A stretch of 63,562 nucleotides of DNA, counting the filler, from Octopus bimaculoides (Eukaryota), in NCBI RefSeq assembly GCF_001194135.2. It is 4 parts of 4 records of this genome, joined end to end, with 100 filler letters (N's around TTAATTAATTAA, not from the genome) between each part and the next. Parts side by side here need not be neighbours in the genome. Positions count along the whole stretch, not along the records: positions 51,798 to 62,148 come from NC_069005.1; 3 more parts are not named here. One strand, 5' to 3'. Below the pieces are notes generated by a model, which did no database searches, was not told the DNA's origin, and saw nothing but the letters and a program-made list of their open reading frames with translations. A program made the position numbers and the translations under genes. Shown here piece by piece: positions 52,330 to 62,254 of this stretch. The first letter of the stretch is position 1. The number at the start of each line of letters is the position of its first letter.

Positions 52330-53300
52330 AATGATGTTTAACATTACAAATCAGAGAGACCCGGGCTGTGCCTACTGAAGACACGCATAAGCTTGAAAGA
52401 AATGAAGCCAGTATGCTCTGCTGGATGGGTGATGTCACTGTGCATATATCATCATCATCATCATCGTTTAACGTCCGCTTTCCATGCTAGCATGGGTTGG
52501 ACGATTTGACTGAAGACTGGTGCAACCAGATGGCTACACCAGGCTCCAATCTAATTTGGCAGAGTTTCTACAGCTGGATGCCCTTCCTAACGCCAACCAC
52601 TCAGAGAGTGTAGTGGGTGCTTTTACATGTCACCCGCACGAAAACGGCCACGCTCGAAATGGTGTCTTTTATGTGCCACCCGCACAAGAGCCAGTCCAGG
52701 GGCACTGGCAACGATCTCGCTCGAAAACCCTACAAGGCCAGTCAGGCGGTACTGGCAAGAGTCACGCTCAGGATGGTACATCTTACGTGCCACCCGCACA
52801 TATATGACAGAGTATAAGTGATTGAAGAGAAATACTGGGTATATGAGGCATCAGAAGTGGTAGACCCAGGAAGACGTGGGGCAGATTGGTCAGAAAGGAT
52901 CTTCAGCTGTTGGGCCTCACAGAAGAGATGACAAGAGACTAAGACTTCTGGTGCTTTGCTGTGCTTGAGAGGATATGTCAAGCTAGGTGAAATCATGATT
53001 GTCCTTGCAGTACAGGTGTTTCCTCTGCATCCCTCTTCAGATGAGAAGATCCTTATCTTGTGAGCTCGTGGGTGCTGGTGCCATGTAAGAAGTGCCTGTA
53101 CTGGTAGCACGTAAAAGTGTCCATATCGATACTGTATAAAAGCACCCAGTACGCTCTGTAAAGTGGTTGACATTAGGAAGGGCATCCAGCTGTAGAAGCC
53201 ATACCAAAATAGACACGCAACCCAGGCAATCTTCAGCTGGCCAGCTCCTGTCAAACCATCCAACCCATGCCAGCATAGAAAACGAACATTAAATGATGAG
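52330..53300. mobile_element. RTE LINE fragments plus an inverted pair of RTE-tailed SINE family E copies (52447-~52630 and ~53140-53300)
   Basis: KLERNEASML.WM and RPRKTWGRLVRKDLQLLGLTEEMTRD are RTE remnants. catcatcgtttaacgtccgctttccatgctagcatgggttgg is inverted relative to ccaacccatgccagcatagaaaacgaacattaaatgatga. Confidence 0.75.
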
Positions 53301-53521
53301 GGTACTCCAAAATTCTAGTGGACAAAGTTTGGATTTCCATGTCCATACTACAGTGCAGTTTAAATTTTTGGCATCCTTTTAATTGTATCATGTTATTTGT
53401 GAACCTTATGACATTCAAAAACTCTACACCTTACTGTCTCTTCTTAATTTTTCTCATTTGCCAGTTTACTTGTGGAAGTATTTTCAACTAAGATATCAGC
53501 CTGCTGCCAGCTACCTCCATA

Positions 53522-53689
53522 ATGGATGTTCCTGAGGATAAATTGGAACAGCGCCGTGCCATCAAGATGGTAACGGCAGCTGACAAATATCTCCAGAAGC
53601 ATGAATATCTGAATGCTTTGAATCTTTACAAGGAATCTGTGGACATTTTGCCTGATCCTGATATCATTTATAAAATTAGGAAACTACGA
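53522..53689 (+). CDS. ERCC6L: ERCC6L/PICH coding exon 1 (56 aa, N-terminal TPR-like helix pair)
   Basis: Acceptor ttttctcatttgccag at 53464; in-frame TAA at 53489 upstream of the ATG; donor GA|GTGAGT at 53690, phase 0. ALNLYKESVDILPDPDIIYKIRKLR aligns with the N-terminal TPR of vertebrate PICH as I recall it. Confidence 0.8.
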
Positions 53690-53869
53690 GTGAGTTTTGT
53701 GTCTCTGTAACCTTGAAAGCGTCATGTGTGTGTGTGTGTGTGTGTATAGTCATTGTTGCCTTAGATTAACCATGGAGCCATTGTACATGTACCATGATTA
53801 TGCCATGATGAACATTGAACCCCTCATTGTGTTGTTATGTCACACTAAGCATGGAAGCATCGTCATTCT

Positions 53870-54150
53870 TATGTCACTGTAATCATCGAACAACCATGTG
53901 GTGTCATTGTGACTAATCATCGAACAACCATGTGGTGTCATTGTGACTAATCATTGAACAACCATGTGGTGTCATTGTGACTAATCATTGAACAACCATG
54001 TGGTGTCATTGTCACTGTAATCATTGAACAACCATGTGGTGTCATTGTCACTGTAATCATTGAACAACCATGTGGTATCATTGTCACTAATCATCGAACA
54101 ACCATGTGGTGTCATTGTCACTGTAATCATCGAACAACCATGTGTCATTG
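53870..54150. repeat. 34/36-bp minisatellite (core gaacaaccatgtggtgtcattgt), 8 visible units, running into a gap
   Basis: Counted directly; located in ERCC6L intron 1. Confidence 0.95.
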
Positions 54151-54469
54151 NNNNNNNNNNNNNNNNNNNNNNNNNNNNNNNNNNNNNNNNNNNNNNNNNN
54201 NNNNNNNNNNNNNNNNNNNNNNNNNNNNNNNNNNNNNNNNNNNNNNNNNNNNNNNNNNNNNNNNNNNNNNNNNNNNNNNNNNNNNNNNNNNNNNNNNNNN
54301 NNNNNNNNNNNNNNNNNNNNNNNNNNNNNNNNNNNNNNNNNNNNNNNNNNNNNNNNNNNNNNNNNNNNNNNNNNNNNNNNNNNNNNNNNNNNNNNNNNNN
54401 NNNNNNNNNNNNNNNNNNNNNNNNNNNNNNNNNNNNNNNNNNNNNNNNNNNNNNNNNNNNNNNNNNNNA

Positions 54470-55028
54470 AAATCTTCCACCAAACCTTAATCACAATTTA
54501 TGTTCCTAACACTAGTTAAATGATAACTAAGTCATTTTACTAAATTCTTTGTTATATTTAAAATTAATTGCAAGAAACAGAGCATCTCAACAGAAGTACG
54601 GTAACAAAAGGGTTAATGTTACCATGATATTTTTAACTCTCTTGATACCAATTCAGCTGAAACCAGCTCTGGTTCTGTAGTACAAATGTCTTGTTTTCAT
54701 AAGTTTTGAACTAAAATCTTCCACCAAACCTTAGTCACAATTTATGTTCCTAACACTTGCTTAAATGATAACTAAGTTATTTTACTAAATTCTTTGTTAT
54801 GTTTAACCCTTTTGATGCCAACCCACACGAAACTGCCTCTGGCTCTGTAGTACAAATGTCTTGTTTCCATAAATCTTGAATTAAAATCTTCTACCAAATC
54901 TTAATCACAATTTAAGTTCCTCACACTAGATTAATGATAGCTAAGTTATTTTTCTAAATTCTTTGTTGTATTTAAAATTAATTGAAAGAAACACAGAGCA
55001 TCACAAAATAAATACAGTAATGAAAGGG
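54470..55028 (+). mobile_element. Three tandem/partial copies of a ~220-bp piggyBac-type MITE
   Basis: The complete copy 54807-55028 is TTAA|CCCTTT...AAAGGG|TTAA. Another AAAAGGG|TTAA end lies at 54606-54616. The internal sequence aaatcttccaccaaacctta.tcacaatttatgttcct occurs three times. Confidence 0.8.
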
Positions 55029-55032
55029 TTAA

Positions 55033-55268
55033 TGTGACAGTCACCTGAAAGTAATAATACTACTGTTGGTTAGACCTAGGAAGCTGCACCGCTTCCTGTC
55101 GGCCTTGACACATTTCCTATGTCCTTATGTTTACAAGAGGGAGACAAGCACCTCCACCCAGCTAAGCCTGCAACCAGAGACCTGTTACTGAGTCTTTTCC
55201 GACAGGAAGTGGTGCAGCTTCCTAGGTCTAACCAACAGTAGTATTATTCCCTTCAGGGGACTGTCACA
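55033..55268. mobile_element. 236-bp hairpin MITE with 70-bp TIRs (4 mismatches), flanked by TTAA
   Basis: 55029-55102 is the reverse complement of 55199-55272 apart from 4 substitutions. Confidence 0.9.
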
Positions 55269-55539
55269 TTAAGTTGACAGCATACAACTACTTCAAGTAA
55301 AATGTTTTGTTTTCATATTTTGAGATTTATATCATGACCTCCTGCTTATCATCATCAGGGTTATGGAGTCGGAGTTGGAAACAATTAAGGGGGTAGCTGG
55401 AGTGGGAGTCTGTATAGTTTTACCGACTCCTACTCACAATGTCTTTATTCTTTGATATAAACCAGTTATAACATATAGGCCTACTCAAAGTACAAGTGTA
55501 TGCATATGTTTTATGAGATATGCAGACTACAGTCACTTG

Positions 55540-55920
55540 ATTACCTCCGCCAAGGAAGGAAGATATATTTTCATCGGCGTTAGTTTGTCTGTCTGTGTGC
55601 AAAATAACTCAAAAAGTTGTGAACAGTATTTGATGAAATTTGCAAGAAAAGGAACAGATGATGAAATTTTGGTAGTGATCCGGGAATTTTTATGGATTCT
55701 AGAAGGAATTTTCATTTGTTATATTTACCTTACATGAAGTATTACAATGTTACGTTCTTTGGTTATCTCCCTTGAAAACACGTTTATTGTTTCCACGTAA
55801 CCTATGGTGGCGTTGCTGTTTCCAAAGTTTATTTTCGTTTCACTATTAGTAATTTTACCCACGTACCTATCTTAAAATGAGCTTGGTGGAGGTCTGCGCT
55901 CTCTGAGTACTTTTCTAGTT
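55540..55920 (+). mobile_element. Non-autonomous Helentron-like (HINE/DINE-1-like) element; related copy at ~57447-57812
   Basis: Subterminal IR cctccgccaagg (55544-55) / gcttggtggagg (55881-92), a short 3' stem-loop, CTAG(TT) terminus and an internal (GTCT)-like tract. This is the architecture described for Helentron-associated elements. Confidence 0.55.
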
Positions 55921-56218
55921 CATATTATTTTGAATTAACTATACATTATTTTTGTAGCTTGGAGATTTAGATGAAGTAACTGTTAATTTTTAGAATGATA
56001 TTGTAGGATTGGTGTGAGAGGCTAGATCTGGCTGATTTGAACATATGGCCAGTTTAAATGCTATGCCTTCCATGCTGGCATGGGTTGAACCTCGAGGTTT
56101 GAAATCTCTGACCTGCCTGAAATTTTACTCCTTGCATCTTTCATTCTTCTAGAAATTTCAATGCATTTTCTTATTTGTGTTTTTGTTCTTTTAATTATTT
56201 AATTTTTCTTCCTTGCAG

Positions 56219-56763
56219 AAATACATGAAACGGAAAGGTTACGACTTAGGGGAAAACAAAGAGAACATCGATTCCTGTGAACCAGCTGCTAATGAAATTG
56301 AGAACTCTGATGAGAACTTAATTAAAAAAGTTAAGTCACCTGACATTTTGAAAGAACAAAGTGATTTCTATTGTTCTTCAAATAGTCAGAATCCACCTTC
56401 CAATTCCCATCAAATGTCTGCTAAAAGTCCTCTATTGGACACTGACAAACAAATTGTAAAGAAACAGAATGATAAAAGTCCCCTCACTCAAAGTATGGAA
56501 CAGTTGTCGCTATGCAGTAAACAGCCGGTACCAGTTAAAGCTGAAGATGAGGTCAGAGTCCCTCTCGGAGATGAAACCAACAAAGCCTCTCTGGCTGACG
56601 AAGTCAAAAGGCCTCCCAAAAAGGCTGTTGTTGAATATGATGGCCCAATACGTGACTTCAAGGACCTTCGCAAATATCTTTATCCTCATCAGAAAGAAGG
56701 CATGAAATGGTTGGCTCGGTTGTACTCAGATGGCAAAGGTGGCATTCTTGGAGATGATATGGG
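56219..56763 (+). CDS. ERCC6L: ERCC6L/PICH coding exon 2 (long low-complexity linker plus start of the SNF2 ATPase)
   Basis: Acceptor tttttcttccttgcag at 56218, phase 0 matching exon 1. LYPHQKEG..WL..LY.DG.GGILGDDMG. Donor GG|GTTAGC at 56764, phase 2. Confidence 0.92.
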
Positions 56764-57119
56764 GTTAGCAAAGAGTTCTTTCTTGTTTTATTTATTTATT
56801 TATTTATTCTTGTGTAATTGTGAGCATGGAATTCCAGTGTTTTTGCTGAGTTAATTAGTCAGACAGTATTCATGAAGGAGAGGCATAGAACCTCCCCGTC
56901 ATTTAGCAAGACATCTTACACTGCTTGCCTCTCAGCTTAACTGATACTATATAAGCCAACATTTTTATTTTACAGATGACTGGATTAATGGTTTACCATT
57001 TCCATCATTGGTCTAAGGCCATGCTGGGGCATTGCCTTCATAAATAGTTGATAATACAAGACAATAAGAAAGCCTGTGTGTGGTTACTCTAAAAACAACA
57101 TTGATAATATAGTCTAGGG

Positions 57120-57436
57120 CAGTGGTTCCCAAACTATGAGCCGCGACCCATCAGTGGGTCGCAAAAAGTTATAAAATTACGCATTAGCTTTGATTAACTG
57201 CTGTCTATCGAGATTCAGCAATGGTTGAGATTAAAAGCAAATTTCGAAATAAACTGCAGCTCTCGAATTCTTTATGGCTGAAACTATCACGCATTGAACC
57301 TGATGTTAATTCTATTATTGAGCGTAGCAAAAAACCGGGCTCATCCTTCTCACAGGCCTCAATGAAAATGTAATCTGAAAAAAATTTGTTTCTTTCATTA
57401 ATGTTTTTACCCAGTAGAGTTAAGTGGGTCGCCATA
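57120..57436 (+). mobile_element. Non-autonomous Charlie-type hAT element retaining the transposase C-terminus; 3' end lost in a gap
   Basis: CAGTGGTTCCCAAAC terminus preceded by gtctaggg (Charlie-type NTCTAGAN-like target). Internal translation SAMVEIKSKFRNKL...LSRIEPDV...HPSH. Confidence 0.75.
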
Positions 57437-58004
57437 NNNNNNNNNNATTATTATCTCTGCCTTAGCGAAGGCGGAGGTATTGTTTTCAGTTGTGTTTGTT
57501 TGTCCATGGACAATATGTCTCAAGAACCGCTGGATGGATTCGGATGAAACTTTCAGGGATGTTTGGCCTCGTAACTGGCGTGAACTGATTCGATTTTGGG
57601 ATCAATCTGGTATCTGACAAAAATTCTGGATTATTTTAACTGTTTTTTTACTTGATTTTTGAGAATGGTTGGGTTCATTTTTAATATTCTCGTTTGTGGG
57701 AGCAGTTGAGTTTATTTCAAATATTCTCAATTTAAAAATCACCTCTGGCTAATTGTTGAGAGGACGCTGGTGTTGCCTTGGTAGAGGTTTGTACTCTCTG
57801 AGTACTCTTATTATTAAAGCAGTGAGTTGGCAGAATTGTTAGAATTGTTTCTGCTGAGGTCGACTTTGCCTTTCATCCTTTTGGGGTTGATATGGAAAGC
57901 GGACGTTAAATGATGATGATGATTGGATATGGACACGGGCTCCATGACAGTTACACTCGTTTACAACCATCATGTGAAGTTATGGTAACACTCACATATA
58001 CATA

Positions 58005-58680
58005 CATATACTCAATATGCAGTGACAGAATCAACAAGAATACTGTATAGCAGCCTGGACAATCTATTTTGTTTTCTTGTTATTTAATCCCAGATCATTA
58101 ATGATTAAGACAACCTATTAACAGAACTGTTCTATCCAGGACCATCCTGTCTTTTCTTTCTTTTTTTTTTCTTATTTAATCTTAGCTCATTAATGATTAA
58201 GACAACCTATTAACAGAACTGTTCTATCCAGGACCATCCTGTTTTCTTCTCTTTTTTTTCTTATTTAATCTTAGCTCATTAATGATTAAGACAACCTATT
58301 AACACAATTGTTCCAGCCAGGATTATCCTGTTTTCTTTTTATTTCAAACAATATATCTAACAATGTATAGCATGTATTTTGAAATACATGCATATACTCT
58401 ATATGCAGTGACAGAATCAACAAGAATACTGTATAGCAACCTGGACAATCTATTTTGTTTTCTTGTTATTTAATCCCAGATCATTAATGATTAAGACAAC
58501 CTATTAACAGAACTGTTCTATCCAGGACCATCCTGTTTTCTTTTCTTTTTTTTCCTTATTTAATCTTAGCTCATTAATGATTAAGACAACCTATTAACAC
58601 AATTGTTGCATCTAGGACCGTCCTGTTTTCTTTTTATTTCAAACAATATATCTAACAATGTGTCTCATGTGTCATACATC
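58005..58680. repeat. Higher-order tandem duplication: two ~380/290-bp blocks containing 3 and 2 copies of an ~85-95-bp subunit
   Basis: ttatttaatc..agctcattaatgattaagacaacctattaaca recurs at ~58078, 58171, 58261, 58466 and 58557. The block head catatactc.atatgcagtgacagaatcaac occurs at ~58005 and ~58391. Confidence 0.9.
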
Positions 58681-59119
58681 ATTTTAAAGACAAGTAGCAT
58701 GTATTTTGAAATAGATATAATTCTTCTAAAGCTCTTTTGCTGATCTTGGATGGAGTTAAATAGTTAATCAAAGTACTAAATTTTTTTTCTTTCTTTCCAT
58801 ACATTATATTTAAAAATAATTCCCACATATTTGTTGTGTTTTGGATGACGCTTGTTTTAAACTTAATCTACCATTTTTTTTGTAATTAATTTATCAACCC
58901 CAAAAGGATGAAAGGCAAAGTTGACCTCAGCGGAATTTGAACTCCAAATGTTACAGCAGATGAAATACCGCTAAGCATTTTGCCCAGTGTGCTAACGATT
59001 CTGCCAGCTCACCACCTTAATAATAATAATAATAATATGATAATAATGATGATGATGATTATTACATAAAATAGAGAAATTGGTTATAATGTTGATATGT
59101 GTTGTGCCTTTCATTTCAG

Positions 59120-59245
59120 TCTTGGTAAAACTCTTCTGATGATTGGTTACCTTGCCAAAATGTTTGAGGTTGGAGAAGTTGAAACAGCTCTTGTTGTAGT
59201 ACCGAGTTCTTTGATATTGCCTTGGCATCAGGAAATTGATAAATG
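59120..59245 (+). CDS. ERCC6L: ERCC6L/PICH coding exon 3 (helicase motifs I and Ia); absent from the ORF track
   Basis: tttcatttcag|T CTT GGT AAA ACT completes DDMG-LGKT; ALVVVPSSLILPWHQEIDKW; donor TG|GTAAG. 126 nt, phase 2 to phase 2. Confidence 0.95.
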
Positions 59246-59496
59246 GTAAGTAGGGCTGCCTTAATCTCTCTCTCTCTTTCTCTCTCATGCTAATGATCAA
59301 GAAATTTGTTTTGCAATCATTAAGTCCCGGATTCATTCCCACTGTGTGGCATCTTGGGCCAATGTCGGTTCCTACAGTCTCAGGCCGACCCATATGTGGT
59401 GAGTGAAATTGGGTTGCCATGCTGATTCCACCTGAAGATTTCAATTACAGTACACTTACTAATACAGTGAACTTAGTTCAGTTGATTGAACTCTCC

Positions 59497-60008
59497 TTTA
59501 CTCTTTTACTTGTTTCAGTCATTTGACTGCGGCCATGCTGGAGCACCACCTTTAGTCGAGCAAATCGACCCTAGTACTTATTCTATCGGTCTCTTTTTGC
59601 CAAACTGCTAAGTTACAGGGATGTAAACACACCAGCATCGGTTGTCAAGCAATGTTGGGCGGGGGGACAAACACACACACAAACACACATACATATATAT
59701 AAATACACATATGTATGACGGGCTTCTTTCAGTTTCCGTCTACCAAATCCACTCACAAGGCTTTGGTCGGCCCGAGGCTATATATATGTGTGTGTATGTT
59801 TGTGTGTCTGTGTTTGTTCCCCCAACATCGCTTGACAACCGATGCTGGTGTGTTTACGTCCCCGTAACTTAGCGCTTCGGCAAAAAGATACCAATAGAAT
59901 AAGTACTAGGCTTCCAAAGAATAAGTCCTGGGGTCGATTTGCTCGACTAAAGGCGGTGCTCCAGCATGGCCGCAGTCAAATGACTGAAATAAGTAAAAGA
60001 GTAAAGAG
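59497..60008. mobile_element. Inverted pair of SINE family C copies (- 59497-59780, + 59785-60008) inside ERCC6L intron 3
   Basis: ttactcttttacttgtttcagtcatttgactgcggccatgctggagcacc is the near reverse complement of ggtgctccagcatggccgcagtcaaatgactgaaataagtaaaagagtaa; ~200-bp arms. Confidence 0.9.
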
Positions 60009-60170
60009 TATAGTGAATCTAGATCCAAATTATGCAGTGTGTCTCACATTTTAGGACGATCAACAAGATTTTACTGCTATTTTTATCATGTTGAATGATC
60101 GTGTAGTTATTTCTCTTTCTGATGATTGATTCTGCTATTATGATATTCTGCTATTCTTGTGTTCTTTCAG

Positions 60171-60339
60171 GGCTCCAGGATTGAATTACGATTCATTCCA
60201 TGACAAGGGAAAATCTGGCAGAAAGAAAACCCTTCAATTCATCCAGAGAAGAGGAGGTGTTCTTCTTGTGACTTACGGTTTATTAGCGAACAACTACGAG
60301 GATCTTTCAACTGACCGAACTGGTCAGGAGTTTGTTTGG
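60171..60339 (+). CDS. ERCC6L: ERCC6L/PICH coding exon 4 (motif Ib region)
   Basis: gttctttcag|G completes TGG. APGL...FH...IQRRGGVLLVTYGLL...GQEFVW matches the PICH-typical GQEFVWDY. Donor GG|GTAACA; 169 nt. Confidence 0.95.
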
Positions 60340-60787
60340 GTAACACAACATTCACACCTTCTTCTAGTGTGGTTTCTGGTTCATTCCCACTGTGCAGTAC
60401 CTTCGGCAGATGTCTTGTACTATAGCTTTGTGAATGGATTTGGTAGAACGAAACTGAAAGAATCCCATCCTATATATATGTGTGTGTGTGTGAAGGCACA
60501 TAGCTTAGTGGTTAGGGTGTTGCACTCACAATTGCAGGATCATGGGTTTGATTCCCAGACCAGGTATTATGTTCTTTAACAAGACACTCCATTTCACATT
60601 GCTCTGTGATCATTTCATCATCTGACATGTGGCACACTGTGCACATGCACAAGTAATGTCTATTTCATGGGGGGAGTGAGCTTATGTATACACAAATATT
60701 TGATCAGTATAAACAAATCATCTGTGTGGTTGTTCGGCAAGAAATTGCCGAACCCTCATACATTGTCTAACAATGGGAGAGTCCATG

Positions 60788-60833
<46 letters not shown>

Positions 60834-61149
60834 GATGATATCTCCACAATGTGTTGATGAGATAAACATGTAATCGCTGCCAAAATAGCCAGAGATTTCT
60901 CCCCAAAGGTCTAAAGTAGACTCCTTATGGATCGATTTTTGATATTGATATATATATACTAGCTGACATACCTGGTAATTCTCAGGAAAGCAGGGCTTAT
61001 CCCTTGGTTCTGTTCTCAAAATTGTTTCGCTAATCCAATAACAACAATACAAAGTATGTAACCCGTAAAACGGTTTTTGTGCATTTATTGAGAATACCGA
61101 ACTGTCTTACACAGGATCTTGTTTTTAGGATTTCCCAATAAGTTGTTGT

Positions 61150-61525
61150 TGGCACTCCATCGCTTACGACATCGAGGGTTCCAGTTGATCCGATCGACGG
61201 AACAGCCTGCTCGTGAAATTAACGTGCAAGTGGCTGAGCACTCCACAGACACGTGTACCCTTAACGTAGTTCTCGGGGATATTCAGCGTGACACAGTGTG
61301 ACAAGGCTGACCCTTTGAATTACAGGCACAACAGAAACAGGAAGTAAGAGTGAGAGAAAGTCGTGGTGGAAGAGTACAGCAGGGTTCGCCACCATCCCCT
61401 GCCAGAGCCTCGTGGAGCTTTAGGTGATTTCGCTCAATAAACACACAACGCCCGGTCTGGGAATGGAAACTGCGATCCTATGACCGCAAGTCCGCTGCCT
61501 TAACCACTGGGCCATTGCGCCTCCA
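61150..61525 (-). mobile_element. SINE family B copy
   Basis: Colinear with 9162-9537; tRNA-like A/B boxes on the minus strand. Confidence 0.85.
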
Positions 61526-62017
61526 CACCACAATAAGTTATAAATACCCAAATTGAGAAGTCAGTTATGTAATAACATGAAATTGATTACCCAATAGTAA
61601 GAATTCAAATAAAATAGCCCTGAAAAGGACTTTAATACGCTCCCAGAGTATATAGAACTCAAAAGGTAATAGTAATACGGTATGTATACTAAAATCGTGA
61701 AGCCTGATATGTACTGCCTAATCAGATATGAGATAATAACTCTGACTTAGCCTTTCATCCTTTCAGGGGTCGATTAAATAAGTACCAGTTACACACTGGG
61801 GGTCGATATAATCGACTTAATCCGTTTGTCTGTCCTTGTTTGTCCGCTCTGTGTGTAGCCCCTTGTGGGCAGTAAAGAAATAAGAAGACACTTAGCCAAG
61901 GTGCCACGCAGTGGGACTGAACCTGGAACCATGTGGTTGGGAAGCAAGCTTCTTACCACACAGCCACACTTGAATGTGTATTAACAATGTGTTTTTTTTT
62001 GTTTTTTTTTGTGACAG

Positions 62018-62143
62018 GACTATATGATACTGGACGAAGGTCATAAAATTAAGAATCCCACCAAGACACAGAAAGCGGCCCACCATATTCCGTCTCGTAA
62101 TAGAATTATTATGACTGGAACCCCTATCCAGAACAACCTGGTT
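62018..62143 (+). CDS. ERCC6L: ERCC6L/PICH coding exon 5 (motif II DEGH, motif III TGTP); gene continues beyond the gap/window
   Basis: ttttttgtgacag|GAC TAT ATG: DYMILDEGHKIKNPTKTQKAAHHIPSRNRIIMTGTPIQNNLV, then GTAAG at 62144. An alternative donor at 62141 is possible but weaker. Confidence 0.93.
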
Positions 62144-62254
62144 GTAAGNNNNNNNNNNNNNNNNNNNNNNNNNNNNNNNNNNNNNNNNNNNNTTAATTAA
62201 TTAANNNNNNNNNNNNNNNNNNNNNNNNNNNNNNNNNNNNNNNNNNNNGCGTTC

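Follow-up and report, generated by a model that had tools for sequence, protein, structure and literature searches.

The expanded TPR-ATPase linker of a PICH/ERCC6L orthologue from Octopus bimaculoides: a probable flexible spacer and a candidate KEN degron

PICH/ERCC6L is a SNF2-type translocase which acts on ultrafine DNA bridges in anaphase and has to stay apart from the BLM-TOP3A-RMI complex in interphase. The present analysis deals with a stretch of 63,562 nucleotides from Octopus bimaculoides (hereafter the window), in which the piece at positions 51798-62148 carries, on the + strand, the 5' part of a PICH/ERCC6L gene whose linker between the N-terminal TPR and the ATPase reaches 153 amino acids (aa). 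The reading we favour with moderate confidence is that this linker is a flexible, phosphorylatable spacer, that a match to the destruction box (D-box) of APC/C (anaphase-promoting complex/cyclosome) substrates found in it is young or accidental, and that a KEN motif located outside the insert proper is the sole candidate degron. A short acidic tether of ~30-39 aa has expanded in cephalopods to 153-181 aa of probably disordered, fast-evolving sequence contained in one exon. The main role of the insert would be to lengthen the flexible connection from the N-terminal TPR, which binds partners, to the motor, and it would bear shifting S/T-P phosphosites of the kind used by mitotic kinases on the disordered regions of human PICH. 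Any APC/C-Cdh1 input through KEN would be independent of the expansion, because the motif lies in a block next to the TPR and recurs in other invertebrate phyla.

The linker, its exon and its distribution among orthologues

The linker length was taken as the number of residues from the end of the last TPR helix to the L-[YF]-x-HQ motif, in 44 orthologue representatives aligned from the N-terminus to motif I. It amounts to 26-39 aa in 39 of them, from jellyfish and sea anemone to primate (31 aa), a range which also covers the annelid, echinoderm, hemichordate, arthropod, cnidarian and vertebrate sequences, as well as the bivalves (Mactra, Ruditapes, Pecten) and gastropods (Elysia, Haliotis, Biomphalaria), whose linker is of the short acidic form. 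Longer linkers were found in Schistosoma (56 aa), in Bugula (99 aa, in a protein with extra TPR copies and probably mis-anchored) and in three cephalopods (153, 157 and 181 aa), namely two Octopus species and a second, far more distant cephalopod. Given the short linker of the other animals, the expansion arose on the cephalopod branch, and vertebrates lost nothing. In this alignment, with cephalopods represented by those three sequences, the expansion is confined to cephalopods. A search of protein databases with the linker alone returned zero matches.

The features of the region, all on the + strand, are as follows.
53522-53689, +: exon 1, with the ATG start and the N-terminal TPR, 56 aa (MDVPEDK...KIRKLR), phase 0.
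56219-56763, +: exon 2, comprising the entire TPR-ATPase linker, the Q-motif region and the beginning of motif I (...GILGDDMG); it ends in phase 2.
56219-56677, +: expanded linker, 153 aa running from the acceptor up to the last codon ahead of LYPHQKEG; it is under weak constraint and probably disordered.
56219-56266, +: post-TPR block KYMKRKGYDLGENKEN, identical to the second cephalopod at 12 of 16 residues, located where other animals have their short acidic linker.
56258-56266, +: KEN, linker residues 14-16, candidate APC/C-Cdh1 KEN box.
56333-56341, +: K-S-P site 1 (VKSPDIL), kept in O. sinensis; K-S alone is kept in the second cephalopod.
56423-56431, +: K-S-P site 2 (AKSPLLD), kept in O. 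sinensis and absent from the second cephalopod.
56474-56482, +: K-S-P site 3 (DKSPLTQ), kept in O. sinensis.
56555-56581, +: RVPLGDETN, linker residues 113-121, fitting RxxLxxxxN.
56606-56623, +: basic patch KRPPKK (KSPKKSPKK in O. sinensis).
56678-56763, +: start of the SNF2 ATPase, LYPHQKEGMKWLARLYSDGKGGILGDDMG; the SNF2-rel_dom domain extends from residue 213.

The original prediction, drawn from the DNA alone, had described a PICH/ERCC6L protein with a greatly expanded linker, 153 aa between the TPR exon and LYPHQKEG as compared with about 30 aa in human PICH. The translation of 56219-56677 gives exactly 153 codons, the corresponding interval measures 31 aa in the primate representative, and the orthology and the length comparison agree with that description; the coordinates given for KEN, RVPLGDETN and the three K-S-P sites also proved exact. 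As to whether the linker had been added in this lineage or lost in vertebrates, the first possibility, a gain on the cephalopod branch, is retained and the vertebrate loss is abandoned.

Identification of the gene rests upon the spliced product of exons 1-5, an N-terminus of 377 aa in which a clean SNF2 N-lobe can be read together with the Q-motif region and the GDDMGLGKT and DEGH motifs, and to which Pfam assigns SNF2-rel_dom at residues 213-377 (E = 4.3e-41). Exon 1 yields no Pfam TPR model above threshold and only a weak MIT match; it aligns over its full length with the N-terminal TPR of nine orthologues, with A32, I52 and K54 conserved. Molluscs, an annelid, echinoderms, cnidarians and vertebrates supply the top database matches, which are named ERCC-6-like, include primate PICH, and are not ERCC6 or RAD54. 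The closest relative is the 1441-aa protein XP_036369367.1 of Octopus sinensis, whose locus follows the window collinearly, all five exons sharing their splice sites, with a protein identity of 88% over 377 aa and ~0.15 synonymous substitutions per site (dS). On these sequence comparisons the gene is a PICH/ERCC6L orthologue.

Exon 2, which contains the whole linker, follows the acceptor ttccttgcag (first codon AAA) and is read in phase 0, being joined in frame to exon 1 through the GTGAGT donor of the latter (GT at 53690). The second cephalopod is represented by Logan contigs L001 and L003-L005 (runs SRR29271487 and ERR12921336). The 5,082-nt contig L001 displays an uninterrupted, intron-free reading frame of 1543 codons that includes the whole linker; since introns interrupt this gene in the genomic contigs, L001 apparently derives from spliced mRNA. 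In the 1-kb genomic contigs L003-L005, exon 2 is bordered by the acceptor tttttag followed by AAATATATG and by the donor made of GATATGGG followed by gtgagt, at the same exon borders as in the window. The exon is thus real and apparently expressed in at least one relative, because the splice borders are shared and L001 carries the linker. An annotation artefact, with most of the linker being an intron removed through an internal acceptor, is scarcely credible. Exon 2 does contain thirteen in-frame internal AG dinucleotides, including one at 56390 with a moderate pyrimidine tract (0.65), but the tract of the real acceptor (0.8) is the strongest; moreover, three species keep the frame open throughout these 153-181 codons, O. 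sinensis has the same exon in its NCBI model, and the intron-free contig of another cephalopod holds the complete linker. A downstream acceptor skipping the linker, which the original prediction had named as a possible refutation, was looked for in the window, where all of the internal AGs are weaker and none rivals the true acceptor.

A distinct route to a larger N-terminus, the multiplication of TPR copies, was observed outside the cephalopods, where several tandem N-terminal TPR copies occur in Bugula neritina (P0009, ~five by eye), Argiope (P0132) and trematodes (P0163, P0170).

Composition and evolution of the insert

The commonest residues of the linker are K, S, D and E, and it is also rich in P and N; lysine accounts for 21 of its 153 residues. 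Its mean hydropathy is located below the Uversky charge-hydropathy boundary, whereas that of the TPR and ATPase segments is not. AlphaFold2, run on the exon-2 translation with a shallow five-row alignment, predicts no secondary structure for exon residues 1-146, with a predicted local distance difference test score (pLDDT) of 43-51, and helices begin at exon residue 147 (FKDLRKY). The linker is probably disordered according to this model, and the Ser/Asn/Lys-rich, probably disordered character first attributed to it is supported by composition, hydropathy and AlphaFold2 alike.

With respect to O. sinensis, the ratio of non-synonymous to synonymous substitution rates (dN/dS) is 0.71 for the linker overall and 0.79 for its interior, as compared to 0.24 for the TPR exon and 0.27 for the ATPase; over the first 24 linker residues (residues 57-80) it falls to 0.20. 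The exon and the flanking intron resemble their O. sinensis counterparts to about the same degree. When octopus is compared with the second cephalopod, identity amounts to 20% in the interior, to 12 of the first 16 residues and to 7 of the last 13. Judged from these comparisons, the linker interior is weakly constrained and near-neutral, between two better conserved ends.

Traces of slippage and duplication are also present. A 15-nt direct repeat pair, 51 nt apart, is common to K-S-P sites 2 and 3, which consequently do not represent independent events. In O. sinensis, a 12-nt tandem duplication (opposite window 56604-56605) has turned KRPPKK into KSPKKSPKK, adding two full-consensus S-P-K-K sites. 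Internal repeats were sought as the source of the insert and, with the single 15-nt pair as the only find, this origin was rejected.

These traces, together with the dN/dS of ~0.8, the variation in length from 153 to 181 aa and the 20% interior identity between cephalopod lineages, are what one would expect of a functionless low-complexity insert generated by slippage and duplication, in which tether length would be irrelevant and all motifs, KEN included, incidental. We nevertheless consider such an explanation very improbable. The insert is kept as an open reading frame in both sampled cephalopod lineages, and it is consequently older than their divergence; constraint is clear on KEN and on the post-TPR block, and the density of S/T-P sites is slightly raised in all three cephalopods.

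In this respect, the window linker contains 3 S/T-P sites for 1.5 expected (P = 0.17), that of O. sinensis 5 for 1.9 (P = 0.025) and that of the second cephalopod 5 for 2.1 (P = 0.04), the last five being located at other positions. A full S/T-P-x-K/R CDK site is absent among the three K-S-P sites of the window. The control by CDK that had been proposed for them is accordingly reduced to three minimal S-P sites, at a density just marginally above expectation, although it is plausible, from the three sequences, that proline-directed sites are loosely maintained as a cluster. Polo-box docking requires a Ser at position -1. Docking of this type was rejected for the K-S-P sites, none of which has that residue.

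The D-box-like match and the KEN motif as candidate degrons

The original prediction had gone further, by proposing that KEN and a canonical D-box, together with CDK sites, form a control module in the linker that times the destruction of PICH at mitotic exit. The D-box is defined as RxxLxxxxN (PMC8764033, PMC12401543), with RLPLGDISN as consensus and Val, Leu or Ile at position 7 (P7) in known substrates, where this residue contributes to affinity (PMC12401543). The octopus RVPLGDETN shares six of nine positions with the consensus (R1, P3, L4, G5, D6 and N9), but its P7 is a Glu and not an aliphatic residue. The P1 Arg of a D-box hydrogen-bonds an acidic patch of the coactivator. This position is a Lys in O. 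sinensis (KVPLGDETN, by a single AGA to AAA change) and a Glu in the second cephalopod (EVPLDNAKN). No other RxxLxxxxN occurs in either of the full-length cephalopod proteins, and the RxxLxx[ILVM] matches of both are restricted to the TPR or the helicase fold. From these comparisons, the most likely account of RVPLGDETN is a near-consensus that is recent or due to chance, rather than a conserved and functional D-box. The V-P-L island was also considered as an HP1 PxVxL or a calcineurin LxVP motif and discarded, its residues misfitting either consensus and its size being within chance.

KEN behaves differently in the orthologue alignment which the original prediction had suggested as a check for conserved islands: KEN qualifies as such, being invariant in the three cephalopods, within DLGE-x-KEN, while the interior is 20% identical, and RxxLxxxxN does not, as its P1 Arg changes. 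For the D-box, an absence of conservation had been named beforehand as the result that would speak against it, and this is the case of the key Arg. KEN occurs once in each full-length cephalopod protein (1441 and 1543 aa), without predicted secondary structure at its site (pLDDT ~50 in AlphaFold2). It is conserved above the flanking background and sits at the edge of the 16-residue block beside the TPR, outside the novel insert, at the end of the segment whose aligned counterpart in other animals is the acidic mini-linker. A degron function is plausible for it on sequence grounds.

The composite degron, with CDK sites in the linker and PICH destruction timed by both motifs, is improbable in our view. 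In composition-matched shuffles of the linker, tested post hoc, the chance of KEN is 0.11, that of RxxLxxxxN 0.022, that of both 0.0025 and that of at least three K-S-P sites 0.0005; both motifs lie in disordered sequence, 96 residues apart and surrounded by numerous lysines (21/153), KEN is conserved, the D-box match reaches 6/9 consensus positions, and a later removal of PICH would make sense in view of its role in anaphase. Against this, the D-box Arg varies even within Octopus and is replaced by Glu in the second cephalopod, P7 is a Glu, a second D-box is missing from the disordered regions of the two full-length cephalopod proteins, and no K-S-P site of the window has the full CDK consensus. 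The linker interior is near-neutral, our literature search found no link between PICH and APC/C proteolysis, and immunoprecipitates of human PICH and CDC20 each lack peptides of the other. The composite module is thus not conserved as such, KEN being kept and the D-box Arg not, and the label of canonical D-box had to be given up.

KEN may also be considered by itself, as an old Cdh1 degron or docking site that invertebrate PICH carries at shifting positions, to which both the linker expansion and the D-box match would be irrelevant. A KEN upstream of the ATPase occurs in Ruditapes, Pecten, Bugula, Nematostella, Ptychodera, Argiope and the trematodes Schistosoma and Echinostoma (orthologues P0003, P0008, P0009, P0128, P0132, P0133, P0163 and P0170), in addition to the cephalopods. 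It was found in 11 of 52 representatives for 3.3 expected from shuffles, whereas the other five permutations of K, E and N occur 0-6 times; once cephalopods and trematodes are each collapsed into one lineage, it was found in 9 of 50 lineages for ~3.1 expected (P 0.003-0.006, with global shuffles or shuffles in blocks of 20-40 residues). A KENxxP context accompanies the motif in 3 of these 9 lineages, several instances directly follow a TPR helix or have that context, and KEN is the sole one of both full-length cephalopod proteins. However, the test is post hoc in a region rich in K, E and N, where KEN comes only 139th in over-representation among 3204 tripeptides, and the motif positions are non-homologous, the KEN of Sanderia being located inside a TPR helix. 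Many orthologues also lack an N-terminal KEN, including those of Mactra, Elysia, Haliotis, Capitella, sea urchins and vertebrates. The enrichment across phyla is suggestive, not compelling, and KEN as the only feature of interest appears to us an unlikely, if tenable, explanation. A bolder version, which we would call distinctly unlikely, would make PICH an APC/C-Cdh1 substrate in many invertebrates by means of a KEN moving around the TPR region, so that proteolysis, and not nuclear export, would clear the translocase after anaphase; the cephalopod linker would then serve as a disordered, Lys-rich initiation region, with an auxiliary D-box in this species alone.

Several points weigh against the favoured reading of a phosphorylatable spacer with an accidental D-box match and KEN as sole candidate. 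The evidence for disorder is weak, as it consists of composition and of an AlphaFold2 run on five rows, and the functions of tether and phosphosite carrier are ones that we infer. The conservation of KEN could reflect structure beside the TPR rather than a degron function. RVPLGDETN has six consensus residues and occurs jointly with KEN with a chance of 0.25%; a Lys at P1 might retain weak binding, and the ancestral state of P1 cannot be polarised because only three cephalopod sequences, two of them from Octopus, are at hand. All three cephalopods retain V-P-L and the last N, at 41-42 aa from LYPHQ in each. That conservation is, however, no more than chance, because about one three-residue island is expected in the interior at 20% identity, and KKQ is another such island.

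Gene structure and comparison with known systems

Downstream of the linker exon, the gene continues, on the + strand, as follows, and it runs on past the edge of the piece at 62148.
59120-59245, +: exon 3, (G)LGKT...EIDKW, with splice sites as in O. sinensis.
60171-60339, +: exon 4, APGLNYDSFH...GQEFVW, with splice sites as in O. sinensis.
62018-62140, +: exon 5, DYMILDEGHKIKN...TGTPIQNNL, with the DEGH box.

The introns harbour various repeats. Intron 1 contains a 34-bp minisatellite at window 53880-54144 (7.6 copies, 95% matches), which abuts an N gap at ~54150-54470, and intron 2 contains arrays of an 89-90-bp tandem repeat at 58072-58338 (3.0 copies) and 58466-58634 (1.9 copies), with 88-91% matches. 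O. sinensis has conserved a (TTTA)n run located at window 56786-56815, ~20 nt past the donor of exon 2, and an (AT)23 microsatellite occupies 60788-60833 in intron 4. Interspersed repeats, apparently resembling short interspersed nuclear elements (SINEs), occur at window 51863-52108, 52447-52810, 59492-60010 and 61743-61967; each of them recurs many times over the 37 kb of the O. sinensis locus (L002), with 70-92% identity and on both strands, and they make up part of the surrounding intron sequence. An insertion of ~0.4 kb after exon 2 of O. sinensis (L002 ~4940-5330, opposite window ~56857) resembles this SINE-like family and is absent from the window.

The O. sinensis ERCC6L shares with the octopus gene of the window the same exon structure, KEN and the three K-S-P sites, and possesses a linker of 157 aa; it differs by KVPLGDETN instead of RVPLGDETN and by KSPKKSPKK instead of KRPPKK.

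In human PICH, mitotic hyperphosphorylation occurs, and the protein is regulated by CDK1/PLK1 phosphorylation and nuclear export. Its N-terminal TPR binds the BD1 domain of BEND3, while BD3 contacts the catalytic core, and the ATPase is stimulated (PMC5737856); since BEND3 contacts both the TPR and the core, the length of the tether between TPR and motor could matter. In the full-text literature searched, no paper was found that presents PICH as an APC/C substrate or that discusses a KEN box or D-box in it, in line with the initial impression that such a module was undescribed, and a 2021 review on PICH leaves the APC/C unmentioned. Human PICH does contain a conserved motif fitting the ABBA consensus of APC/C coactivator ligands. 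This motif binds RMI1-RMI2 instead; in human cells, reciprocal immunoprecipitation and mass spectrometry detected no CDC20 peptides with PICH nor PICH peptides with CDC20, and the post-mitotic separation of PICH and BTRR is attributed to nuclear export (bioRxiv 10.64898/2026.09.10.750333 for all of these points). Degron-like motifs in PICH have therefore already misled once.

If the N-terminal KEN did mediate APC/C-Cdh1 proteolysis in some animal lineages, it would represent a second, alternative solution to the problem of keeping PICH off BLM-TOP3A-RMI, a separation attributed in human cells to phosphorylation and nuclear export. As it stands, the result is a clade-specific four- to six-fold expansion of a tether, which makes a modest addition to the knowledge of PICH, and a warning that even a D-box of textbook appearance, when located in disordered sequence, can be restricted to a single species.

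Compared to known APC/C degrons, the octopus KEN resembles them by its location in disordered, Lys-rich sequence. The D-box match departs from them by the Glu at P7 and by an R1 that is changed in the nearest relative, and the ABBA-type motif of human PICH, for its part, has another partner, RMI1-RMI2. The architecture of PICH also includes HELICc, a PICH family domain (PFD) and a C-terminal TPR (PMC8565832), which in the octopus gene would lie past the edge of the piece. The O. sinensis orthologue has a Helicase_C domain, and visual inspection of its sequence suggests a PFD-like segment and a TPR-like tail at the C-terminus. A PDB sequence search returned other SNF2 remodellers only, with no structure of the PICH ATPase or linker. 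Octopus and human PICH are alike in the succession of an N-terminal TPR, a linker and a SNF2 ATPase beginning with L-[YF]-x-HQKEG...GDDMGLGKT...DEGH, the primate representative being 52% identical to the octopus protein over residues 203-377 (E = 5.5e-48). They differ by the length of the linker, 31 aa in the primate representative and 153 aa in octopus, and by KEN, which the primate N-terminus lacks and which the cephalopods have directly after the TPR. What the octopus gene offers is a known protein in variant form, not a new system.

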